DNA of 63,751 nt, counting the filler, from Hyphochytrium catenoides (lineage: Eukaryota > Protista > Hyphochytriomycota), in NCBI GenBank assembly GCA_900088475.1. It is 12 parts of 12 records of this genome, joined end to end, with 100 filler letters (N's around TTAATTAATTAA, not from the genome) between each part and the next. Parts side by side here need not be neighbours in the genome. Positions count along the whole stretch, not along the records: positions 1 to 30,179 come from FLMG01000969.1; 11 more parts are not named here. One strand, 5' to 3'. Shown here in pieces: positions 561 through 12,641 of this stretch (position 1 is its first letter; each line of letters starts with the position of its first letter). The translations under genes were made by a program, and so were the position numbers. The notes beneath the pieces are model-generated. The model was not told the origin of the DNA and ran no database searches. It was given only the letters and a program-made list of their open reading frames with translations.

Positions 561-3500
561 ATGGCCTCGCCTGTCCCGGTTCTTCCGTGTGAAAACCTAG
601 AGAGAACGTCGCTGAATGACTTTGAAGAGCTGGTGGAGTCTCTCTCTCTCCCCAGAGAGACAATCAGCAGACCACCTAAGAAAGTACACGCAGACTCTCC
701 TCTCTCCTCCCGGACGGTGGAGTTGCCAGGCGCAGTGGAGGTGCGAAGGGCATCCGAAGGGGGAGACACCGTGAAGGGAGGACAAGGAGATAGATTTGAG
801 ACTGAAGGTAAGCCGGAGAGGAAGACAACGTACGAAGAAGAGGCATGGCAAAGCCCAGTAAGAGAGAGGGACATATAGAGGAGCAGGGAAAGAAGAAGAG
901 AAGAGAGAGAGAGACACACATCCAGAGAGAGAGAGAGAGAGGGACATATAGAAGAACAAGGAAAGAAGAAGAGAAGAGAGAGAGACACACACATCCAGAG
1001 AGAGATAGCGAGAGAAAGAGTGGCGGAAGACACAGATCGAGGGGATATAACTGAGAAGGGAGGAGAACTAGGTCAAAAAGTGAAGGAGACGTAGAGGAAA
1101 GAAAGACGACAGACAGATCAACGCCCTTCTGGTGTCGCTATCGTCAGACCGATCAGTCATTGGCAGTTGCTTCCTTTGTGCTCTCCTCCATTCCTTCTCT
1201 TAGCCCTCGCTCCACTTCTGATCGCTCCCTTTCTCTCTCTCTCTCTCTCTCTCTATCTATCTATCTATCTCTCTATCTATCTATCTATCCATCTCTCTCT
1301 CTCTCTGTCTCTCTCTCTTTCTGAAACTCCTTCTCTCGCTAACTCTTTTATATCTCTTTTTCCTTCACTCCCATCCGCGGTGCCCTTTCTTCTTCCTTAC
1401 AACCTCCCGTTAGTTCGTCGGCTCAGCTACTATCTAGAGCTCGAAGGGGTGCGACAACGAGGAGAGTATGGAGAGGAAGAGAAGAGCTTTGCAGAGGAGT
1501 TGCCATGCCAAGACGAGCTCTACAAGGCTATTCATAGGCTTCAAAGCGCTCTTTTGGAAGCAAAAGAGAAGCTGAACGACGCCTTAGCCTCTCAAGGAGG
1601 AGGAGAAAGAGACAAGTCAGACGGAACAGCAACAGACAATCCTTGTGCTACCCCGTCTCAGAGCTCGAAGTTGTTCTCTTTGCAGGCCCACCTGCAAGGG
1701 GCTTGTGAGACAATTATCCCCGCGATCGCGTCAGCCGTCGAGAACGCAAAGGAGGAAGTTTCTCAGCTACTAGGTAGGAGTCTCCACCCTGCTCTCGCCC
1801 TTCCTTACGTTTCTTTCTGCCCTCTTTCTTTCTCTCCTCTCTCTCTCCTTTTCTTAGCCCTTTCTTTCTCTTTCTCTTTCTCTTTCTTAAGTTTTTCTAA
1901 CTCACTTTGAAATTGCTGTGCCATTCTTCTCTTGCTTCTCTGTCGGATAGCCGTCTCATTACGCTTTTCCGACCGCTGCTGGTGTTTTGATGATAACTCT
2001 CGCGCTTTGTCAGTATCGGGGCTCACCTAGCTTTTCTTGTCAACTTTATCTCCCTTCTTTCTCTCTCTCTCCTGCTTTCTCTTGCTTCACTTTCCTTCCT
2101 GCCTGATTTTTCTGCCCTCTCTGACTCGCTGTCTCTTTCTCGTGGGCAGAGGATGCAATGGATATGGAACAGCCTGAGAAAGAAGAGCTTCTCTCCAAGA
2201 TTAGCAGAGCGGGCTCAAGAAGGAAAAATCTGTCCCTCACCAGCAGCCTTGCAAGGTGTGGCTTTAATGTTTCCCTCTTCCTCTTTGTTATATCCTCTCT
2301 CTCTCTCTTCCTGTCCCTCGAAACTCATTATGGGTAGAGATGGACCCAGACTCCTCTGATCTAACCATCAGCACTGTTTGCCCTGTCTTCGCTTTCTCCG
2401 TTGTGTCTTCGATCTAGTCTCCTCGTCCTCATGCATGACTCCCGTTGTCCTCCCTAATACGTCCTCGCTCTAGTACTTTCTTTCTCTCTGTCTCTCTCCT
2501 CTTCTTCCACAGTAGCTCCTGTACCTGACTCTCTAATGGCGTTGCTCATCGTGTAACCTCCAGGGCCCGTGGTAGCTTCATCAAGAGGGTGAGCAATGGT
2601 AGCATCAGGAACCCGATGAAGGAGGACCTGGAGAGAGCGCGGGCTAACCCGCACATGTCCGTGGCGTCCTTTCTCAGAACCATTCCCGTCTTTCAGGTGA
2701 GAATCCCACCATGGCTCTAGGCTTTCTTTCTCTCTCTGTCTCTGTCTCTCTCACATCCTTAGTAGTGTTTTCCCGTCTCTTGCAACGACATCTAGCTCGC
2801 AATCCTAATATCCTTCTCTCTCTTCTCTCGGTATAACGCATTTTCCTTTTAGGCGCTGACGGAGTCTCAGCTCTCTCGTCTCTCGAAGCACGTGGGGTTC
2901 GTCCGCTTTGACTCCGAAGAGTTCATCATTAGACAGGGCGAGATAGGCGGCACCTTCTTTATCATCGAAGACGGAGAGGTATGAACGGGGAAAGAGGAAG
3001 CCTTTATCTCCCCTTCCCCCTCTCCCCTCTTCCTCTCCCATCTCTACTATTATTAGTGTCACATCTCTCCCTTCTGGTCTCTCCATGCTTCACCTCTTTC
3101 TTCTTGCACTTTAGATGCCTACTCCCGAGTTCCTGGTCCTCTTTTGCCATGATCGTTACTACGCTTGCTCGCCTCTTCTCATTCCCTTTCGCCTCCGTCG
3201 CTCTACGAGTCGCCTGCATATTCATGTTCTGTGACTCCTGTTCTCCTCTCCCAATTTCTATCCCTTTCTGGTCCCTCTCTCTCTCACACACATATAGAAA
3301 CCTAAACCTGCACACGCTGACTCTGATAATGGCACATTGCTCGTTACCTATCATTTTGTCTGGCACAATTCCTCTCTCTCGCTCTCTGACATCTTGTCCC
3401 ACTCTCTCCTTTTCTCTTTTATATTTGGCAATTTCTTCTTTCCTTCGTTTCCTCTTCTCTTCCTCTCGCCGTATCCTGTATCTGGCACGCGTCCCTTTCT

Positions 3501-12500: not shown

Positions 12501-12641
12501 CTTTCCTGGTTGGAAGAGCACCTGCACCTGGAGATGACGGACGCAGAAGCCAGCAAGTTCTTTGAAGGGCTCATTATGGCGTCGATGAATGCTCTCAGTA
12601 CGCAACTTAATGAAGCGGCACATCTTCTGAGGCATGCATAG
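561..12641 (+). CDS. Class-I-like phosphatidylinositol 3-kinase with N-terminal cNMP-binding and GAF domains (CNB-GAF-C2-helical-kinase), ~24 exons
   Basis: Phase-consistent GT-AG exon chain read by hand: 561-807, 1414-1773, 2150-2255, 2564-2696, 2853-2978, 3527-3694, 3994-4068, 4484-4601, 4761-4888, 5202-5345, 5771-6080, 6473-6563, 6930-7036, 7388-8124, 8512-8721, 8973-9080, 9365-9497, 9678-9847, 9964-10064, 10464-10653, 10956-11051, 11268-11484, 11792-(N gap)-11974, 12462-12641. Motifs: CNB ([17 protein letters not shown]; [17 protein letters not shown]), GAF ([14 protein letters not shown]; [28 protein letters not shown]; IGVLQLIN), C2 ([10 protein letters not shown]; VVWDEW), helical ([19 protein letters not shown]; LQLTQVLKWE; GHVLFWFLK), kinase ([49 protein letters not shown]). 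The 5' start is tentative because an AG acceptor precedes the ATG. Confidence 0.93.

Follow-up and report, generated by a model that had tools for sequence, protein, structure and literature searches.

The DNA that we analyzed, a stretch of 63,751 nucleotides from the genome of Hyphochytrium catenoides (hereafter, the window), carries on its plus strand, at positions 561 to 12641, what our evidence supports as one gene for one polypeptide, in which a cyclic nucleotide-binding domain (CNB) and a GAF domain stand ahead of the C2, helical, and kinase domains of a phosphoinositide 3-kinase (PI3K). The locus adds a new, intron-rich member to an uncharacterized class I PI3K variant, and by sequence comparison it is a member of a family widespread in stramenopiles. 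Class I PI3Ks are classically controlled from upstream by receptors, adaptors, Ras, and G-beta-gamma, and built-in sensors of cyclic AMP (cAMP) or cyclic GMP (cGMP) on such a kinase would join two major second-messenger systems in one polypeptide. We consider it somewhat probable that the gene encodes a single protein made of an N-terminal region, a CNB of the type found in the protein kinase A regulatory subunit (PKA-R) and PKG, a GAF domain of the phosphodiesterase (PDE)/CyaB type, and a class-I-like C2-helical-kinase core, and that cyclic nucleotides (cNMPs) switch its synthesis of 3-phosphoinositides.

Gene model and domain order

Working by hand from the DNA, and independently of an earlier note on this sequence, we reconstructed the splice chain and then checked it by script. 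Twenty-four exons with GT-AG introns join into a stop-free reading of about 1,480 amino acids (aa). Across exons 1 to 22 (561-11484), every acceptor is AG, every donor is GT, and all phases match, giving 1,358 aa free of stops, while exons 23 and 24 complete the kinase domain and end in a TAG terminator. GC content is about 50% in the window, and the introns of the PI3K gene are CT-rich and 116 to 606 bases long. The CT-rich introns at first hinted at a coccidian or apicomplexan source, a reading that the relatives of the gene do not support, every named one being a stramenopile; the affinities of the gene likewise point to a stramenopile. Pfam scans, run on stop-free plus-strand pieces of the window, placed cNMP_binding (the CNB), GAF, PI3K_C2, PI3Ka (the helical domain), and PI3_PI4_kinase in that order along the protein; the upstream pieces 450-875 and 1095-1907 matched no Pfam family. 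The catalytic motifs read from the model are the Lys at 10015-10017, DRHGDN at 11412-11429, and DFG at 11466-11474. The exons are as follows.

561-807, plus strand: exon 1; putative start ATG at 561, the first ATG of the open reading frame (ORF); GT donor, with a phase that fits exon 2; no recognizable domain
1414-1773, plus strand: exon 2; helix-rich N-terminal region; AG and GT sites, phase 1 in and out; no Pfam match
2150-2255, plus strand: exon 3, placed by splice phases; contains SRRKNLS, an RRxS-like site
2564-2696, plus strand: exon 4; RARGSF site and N-terminal helices of the CNB (FLRTIPVFQ), matching FL.SIP.F of the family
2853-2978, plus strand: exon 5; first half of the CNB beta-barrel; tblastn matches from 5 of 8 homologues
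3527-3694, plus strand: exon 6; second half of the CNB barrel with the 16-residue phosphate-binding cassette at 3605-3652; Pfam cNMP_binding, E 3.7e-8 (piece 3500-3700); 8 of 8 homologues match
3994-4068, plus strand: exon 7; C-terminal (hinge) helix of the CNB, from the family alignment; phase 0 on both sides
4484-4601, plus strand: exon 8; CNB-GAF linker; SL..HI..F motif kept across the family
4761-4888, plus strand: exon 9; start of GAF, from the family alignment; 8 of 8 homologues match in tblastn
5202-5345, plus strand: exon 10; middle of GAF; 8 of 8 homologues match in tblastn
5771-6080, plus strand: exon 11; end of GAF; Pfam GAF, E 2.7e-9 (piece 5774-6085); Protein Data Bank (PDB) matches to CyaB2, PDE5, PDE10, and PDE2
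6473-6563, plus strand: exon 12; first C2 strand (13 residues), bridging GAF and C2; the only exon with phase 1 in and phase 2 out that fits
6930-7036, plus strand: exon 13; C2, from splice phases and the family alignment
7388-8124, plus strand: exon 14; remainder of C2, a low-complexity Ser/Gly linker, and the start of the helical domain; Pfam PI3K_C2 (1.8e-7) and the start of PI3Ka (piece 7387-8184)
8512-8721, 8973-9080, and 9365-9497, plus strand: exons 15-17; helical (PIK) domain; Pfam PI3Ka, 5.8e-24 (piece 8428-8799) and 1e-11 (piece 8970-9131)
9678-9847, 9964-10064, 10464-10653, 10956-11051, and 11268-11484, plus strand: exons 18-22; kinase domain; Pfam PI3_PI4_kinase, 1.3e-11 (piece 9898-10689) and 4.9e-25 (piece 11268-11495)
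11792-11976, plus strand: exon 23; kinase activation loop and next helices; contains an N gap at 11806-11946
12462-12641, plus strand: exon 24; C-terminal helices of the kinase and stop; 8 of 8 homologues match 12462-12638, up to their own C termini

In tblastn searches of the raw window with eight homologues, exons 5-7, 9-11, 14-20, 22, and 24 were matched colinearly with ends at the splice sites, and the family alignment also backs the short exons 4 and 8 through the motifs listed above. Alignments by BLASTP to some homologues start in exon 3, at model residues of about 190 to 207; exon 1 and the putative start had no homologue match in the tblastn comparison. The earlier note had proposed one phase-consistent splice chain encoding a single polypeptide with a CNB, a GAF domain, and then a C2-helical-kinase core. 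Its positions 2564, 4068, 4761, 6080, and 8721 are exact splice sites in our rebuild, the motifs that it had named (FGERALL..RAASV, DRHGDN, and DFG) are all present in the model, the five Pfam families stand in the order that it gave, and the single polypeptide is backed by intron-less ORFs and transcript-derived proteins of relatives.

A stramenopile family of CNB-GAF-PI3K proteins

For the window itself the sequence at hand is genomic DNA, and the evidence for a single gene consists of the splice chain, the spacing, and the ORFs and transcripts of relatives. A metagenome scan with the window's kinase exon gave 80 loci, against which the model was then compared by tblastn, and two of these loci (L017 and L051) matched both the CNB-GAF and the PI3K regions colinearly. 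L017 is a single intron-less ORF of 1,502 aa with all five Pfam domains in the same order; L051, also a single intron-less ORF, of 1,581 aa, has four Pfam domains in order, with GAF not detected by Pfam. Used as a full-length query in a word-indexed search, the L017 ORF found 287 relatives. We tallied domains on the best 120 clusters, and 51 of them hold cNMP_binding and PI3K domains together, 33 with a Pfam GAF as well.

All of the named members are stramenopiles: MAST-4; the chrysophytes Paraphysomonas, Epipyxis, Spumella, one species of Ochromonadaceae, and "Chrysophyte H1"; Thraustochytrium sp. LLF1b, with an additional WW domain; and Chrysophaeum taylorii. The MMETSP entries are transcript-derived complete ORFs, and direct Pfam scans of those from Paraphysomonas and Thraustochytrium found all five domains in order, while another member, the metagenomic P0027, is one intron-less ORF of 6.76 kb on a 71-kb genomic contig, encoding 2,252 aa with all five domains. 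Because transcript-derived ORFs hold all five domains in order, the fusion is made as one mRNA in relatives, and it is the relatives that decide the question of one gene or two. The spliced model aligns colinearly with the family proteins by BLASTP, at 30 to 50% identity.

In a FastTree phylogeny of the helical and kinase regions, which is unrooted, includes some long branches, and was built without class II or III outgroups, the window falls in a clade of 82 rows with a support of 100. Of the 51 CNB-PI3K clusters, 47 fall in this clade, together with every GAF-only cluster and the PI3Ks of oomycetes; protist PI3Ks bearing a Ras-binding domain (RBD) lie outside it as a separate group. The window gene thus combines a colinear CNB-GAF-C2-helical-kinase architecture with placement in the family clade. 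As to the earlier note's question of whether this architecture had been catalogued in stramenopile proteomes, it had, as predicted proteins. Their database names are uninformative ("hypothetical," "PI3K," "CRP-like cAMP-binding protein"), and a full-text literature search, with subscription journals outside its coverage, found no description or biochemical characterization of a CNB-GAF-PI3K. Two papers on PI3K evolution and kinomes (PMC4617754, PMC3823935) likewise contain no description of a CNB-GAF-PI3K and no mention of cNMP or GAF domains.

The family is carried by MAST-4, chrysophytes, and thraustochytrids, stramenopiles that are ecologically dominant in marine and fresh waters, and in decayed form by oomycete plant pathogens. 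For none of these organisms is production of phosphatidylinositol trisphosphate established (PMC3823935). Compact intron-less members, such as a Paraphysomonas protein of 1,154 aa, make the hypothesis of cNMP control testable in vitro, and such a member could serve as a cNMP-controlled lipid-kinase tool.

Some related architectures were also seen. Four metagenomic proteins of the RBD group (P0071, P0076, P0086, and P0099) have three CNBs followed by RBD, C2, helical, and kinase domains, and in some fusions of this type several SH3 domains stand at the N terminus. Fusion of CNB to PI3K seems to have arisen more than once, the fusion in the RBD group apparently being independent. The Chrysophaeum taylorii protein (P0080) has an Exo_endo_phos2 domain, inositol 5-phosphatase-like, ahead of the CNB and PI3K in one protein, and it would carry a phosphoinositide phosphatase-like domain and a kinase in a single chain. 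An exhaustive representative search with exon 14, whose C2 and low-complexity linker make it a poor query, returned 0 matches, and an ESM Atlas search with the same exon returned generic C2 clusters only.

The catalytic core

We classed the core by sequence, with phmmer against the PDB, and by fold, with Foldseek on the AlphaFold model of a family member. The window's helical exon matched p110alpha best (7e-13, versus 3e-7 for Vps34), and its kinase exon matched p110gamma best (1.2e-20), followed by PI3K-C2alpha and p110beta/delta at about 4e-18. When the C2-helical-kinase core of one family member was searched in the same way, the best 60 matches were all class I chains, with scores of 383 bits for gamma, 364 for beta, 362 for alpha, and 357 for delta. 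The AlphaFold model of that member, the 1,154-aa Paraphysomonas protein (predicted local distance difference test, 84.2; predicted template modeling score, 0.82) is predicted to pack the five domains as one body, and its best fold matches are p110alpha and p110delta. The window has the C2, helical, and kinase domains together with the catalytic Lys, DRHxxN, and DFG, and its core is nearer to class I than to classes II and III by PDB phmmer and by Foldseek, the tree having no class II or III outgroup. We therefore describe the catalytic core as class-I-like, with class I p110 as its apparent closest relative.

These results bear out several expectations of the earlier note. It had called the core class-I-like, in line with the p110alpha and p110gamma matches; the AlphaFold check that it suggested, run on the family member, returned a compact body with class I folds best; and the absence that it had claimed of an adaptor-binding domain (ABD) and an RBD holds. 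The N-terminal exons gave no Pfam match to the ABD (PF02192), which is absent from CNB-bearing relatives too. The RBD (PF00794) likewise had no match in the window's gene, and there is no room for one, since the exon next to the GAF exon already carries the start of C2.

In its C2-helical-kinase core, catalytic motifs, and best sequence and fold matches, the window protein resembles p110 alpha, beta, gamma, and delta. It differs from them in having no ABD or RBD, and in the predicted protein the CNB-GAF module occupies the place of these two domains; no p85- or p101-type partner is implied. The activation loop of the family (GNFKSK.G.KRERAPF in homologues) is similar to that of p110gamma, whereas in the window only GHFKY can be read, the rest lying in the N gap; a basic loop is the class I feature that permits PI(4,5)P2 as a substrate. 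A minimal C2-helical-kinase layout without ABD or RBD is shared with Vps34 (class III) and hints at that identity, but PDB scoring ruled it out: Vps34 trails p110alpha on the helical exon and is absent from the best 60 core matches.

In the oomycetes, a class I PI3K of Phytophthora is on record in the literature (PMC3823935). The Phytophthora infestans protein (P0051) belongs to the same helical-kinase clade as the window gene, and its N terminus aligns with the CNB-GAF-C2 profile (hhalign probability 98.8, E 4e-17). It differs in that its cassette is gone and its GAF motifs have decayed, with Pfam detecting neither domain, whereas the window gene keeps both. The PI3Ks of Phytophthora, Pythium, and Plasmopara all lie in this clade and have a CNB-GAF-C2 N terminus decayed beyond Pfam recognition, and the oomycete sensor was apparently lost through decay, not deletion.

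The CNB and GAF domains

The window's CNB has a complete beta-barrel, and it aligns colinearly with family members from its N-terminal helices through its hinge. Its cassette, FGERALL..RAASV, keeps the ribose-contacting Glu and the phosphate-contacting Arg and has Ala after the Arg, just as the earlier note had claimed. Of the 51 CNB-PI3K clusters, 39 match a strict cassette pattern, and the majority of the remainder retain the Glu and Arg; in a 39-member alignment, the F and G of the cassette are invariant, and E, R, and A are each conserved at 90% or more. This conservation argues for selection on ligand binding.

The same note had taken the Ala after the Arg as pointing to cAMP, and here we find the rule weak. 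Among the cassette matches of the 39 strict-cassette clusters, 30 have Ala after the Arg and 10 have Thr. HCN channels have Arg-Thr in the cassette and yet prefer cAMP. Because Ala and Thr both occur within the family, and because of the HCN counterexample, reading Ala as cAMP is unsafe, and nucleotide preference may differ between lineages.

The family CNB finds its best PDB matches in PKA RI-alpha and PKG, and it shares with PKA-R, PKG, and Epac a complete CNB fold and an FGE.AL...RAA[ST] cassette. The window protein differs from these in having a single CNB, not a tandem pair, and a lipid kinase as fusion partner instead of a protein kinase or guanine nucleotide exchange factor. A further likeness to PKA-R is the presence of RRxS-like sites 15 to 40 aa upstream of the CNB, the position of the PKA-R inhibitor site. 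Such sites occur in the window at 2212-2232 (SRRKNLS) and 2564-2590 (RARGSFIKR), and RRGS, RRSS, or RRTS sites stand 15 to 40 residues ahead of the CNB in many members (P0022, P0023, P0027, P0029, and P0004-6). They may be phosphorylation sites for PKA or PKG, or they may be left over from an origin of the module in an R subunit.

The GAF exon of the window matches CyaB2 (1.1e-11), PDE5 GAF-A (7e-11), PDE10 (4e-5), and PDE2 (6e-5) in the PDB. These best matches place it closest, on sequence, to the cNMP-binding GAFs of PDE/CyaB type and bear out the PDE-type GAF claimed before. With the GAFs of PDE2, PDE5, PDE10, and Anabaena CyaB2 it shares a D.Y.D.RF...D..TGY.T..LC.PI block; it differs from them in being single, not tandem, in its approximate NKFDE signature, and in its place between CNB and C2.

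Proposed regulation and its alternatives

We propose that cAMP or cGMP would bind the CNB, and perhaps the GAF domain too; that binding would shift the packing of CNB-GAF against the C2, helical, or kinase domain; and that this repacking would alter lipid-kinase activity or membrane access, turning 3-phosphoinositide synthesis on or off. By analogy, models for such a switch would be cNMPs, which release PKA-R, open Epac, and activate PDE2 and PDE5, and the activation of p110 by release of the p85 SH2 domain. Along this route, it is established that the protein is one chain, that its catalytic motifs are intact, and that its cassette is both intact and conserved, and a compact five-domain body is predicted; regulation by cNMPs, ligand preference, and the lipid product of the family are what we infer. 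A stronger version, possible in our view and put forward tentatively, is a one-protein relay from cNMPs to 3-phosphoinositides in which the CNB directly gates a class-I-like PI3K, with GAF as a second and possibly different nucleotide input. If true, the relay would replace, in stramenopiles, the receptor, adaptor, and Ras inputs of the animal and Dictyostelium class I enzymes.

Several observations weigh against a cNMP-switched kinase made from this gene. The family members nearest to the window (P0007 and P0011) have no cassette Arg, with the CNB domain kept, and the oomycete members have a wrecked cassette; because these lineages lost cassette residues, the sensor, and with it any cNMP control, is dispensable in some of them. 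The ligands of GAF domains are diverse, and in the window the NKFDE signature is approximate, with LINPKG...FTKEEEE supplying N-P-K...F...E-E; several relatives have NK...F...DE. The activation loop falls within an assembly gap whose nominal 141 N's leave the flanks one base out of frame, with 140 or 143 bases restoring it. Exons 1 to 3 and the putative start codon are placed by splice logic, and the single-gene claim is drawn from genomic DNA and from relatives.

A first alternative is that the fusion exists as described and its CNB and GAF domains are not cNMP switches, serving instead in scaffolding, dimerization, or localization, or with GAF binding some other small molecule. The CNB kept without its Arg in P0007 and P0011, the motif-less and yet recognizable CNB-GAF relic of the oomycetes, and the diversity of GAF ligands would all be at home here, and the RRxS-like sites upstream of the CNB suggest phosphorylation control instead. 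Against it, the cassette Glu and Arg in at least 39 of the 51 clusters, across deep stramenopile lineages, are hard to explain without ligand binding, and the window GAF is nearest to cNMP-binding GAFs. We judge this alternative unlikely, though a serious competitor to regulation of the kinase by cNMPs.

A different concern is whether the gap hides a pseudogene or an assembly join, with no full-length kinase made. The N run at 11806-11946 (141 N's) lies inside exon 23 and covers about 47 to 48 codons, including the activation loop, and these hidden codons and the nominal frame are what such an explanation has in its favor. Exon 22 ends in ...HIDFGHVL-G, in phase 1, at 11484. On the left flank of the gap, the bases after the acceptor AG at 11790-91 are GG CAC TTT AAA TAT, which reads G-HFKY; on the right flank, CTC TTA ACA ACC TTA TTC TCT CTA ATG reads LLTTLFSLM and is followed by a GTAAGG donor. 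Exon 24 opens with MSCGIHDLQ, giving the junction LFSLMMSCGI, a conserved PI3K helix. Both flanks thus encode what a kinase should have at these points, with order and strand correct, and for that reason we place the gap within a single coding exon. Family members have 44 to 48 residues between G.FK[SY] and LL..LFSLM, with 48 in all three that share the window's GHFKY, and the estimated gap length is within 1 to 2 bases of this homology-based expectation. With the remaining 4.1 kb of coding sequence also free of stops and frameshifts, a pseudogene or misjoin is very improbable, and the kinase of the window is likely to be intact, the hidden loop and the next two helices aside. The intact core claimed in the earlier note accordingly stands for the Lys, DRHGDN, DFG, and both flanks of the gap, but not for the activation loop and the next two helices, which the gap conceals.

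The boundary between the sensor and kinase halves was also considered. Exon 12, which is 91 bases long and encodes the first C2 strand, begins 392 bases past the GAF exon; its frame has an upstream stop at 6439 and no ATG before 6536, and because 6536 is the first ATG available, a separate PI3K start would cut off that first strand. Although read-through of the exon 11 donor meets a stop after two codons (GK-stop), an in-frame ATG is present at 6536, and the junctions of the window's gene are predicted from DNA, two adjacent genes (a CNB-GAF protein ending just after 6080 and a separate PI3K from about 6536) are scarcely credible, since the second would lack a conserved strand, just 450 bases or so would have to hold a 3' untranslated region, a promoter, and a 5' untranslated region when the next gene is 3 kb or more away, and every relative examined has one ORF or one transcript.

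Surroundings of the gene

The next gene lies at least 3 kb past the PI3K stop codon, compared with introns of 116 to 606 bases inside the gene. The nearest recognizable neighbors are a multi-exon TRAPPC10-like gene on the plus strand at about 17900-25700 (Pfam TRAPPC10_1st and TRAPPC10 on ORF pieces) and a multi-exon gene for the PP2A regulatory subunit B56 on the minus strand at about 26950-29980 (Pfam B56, E 1e-25 to 2e-11, on four exon pieces). In the interval that separates the PI3K gene from TRAPPC10, a plus-strand ORF of 284 aa at 16019-16870 matches no Pfam family and may be a separate gene; it contains KTVRFCDDVEI, which is similar to the PP1-docking motif RVxF. Long microsatellites of (CT)n and (CTAT)n occur at 1-60, 1230-1320, 7250-7330, and 10150-10180, in introns and at the start of the window, and the introns of the PI3K gene show a strong CT bias on the coding strand.

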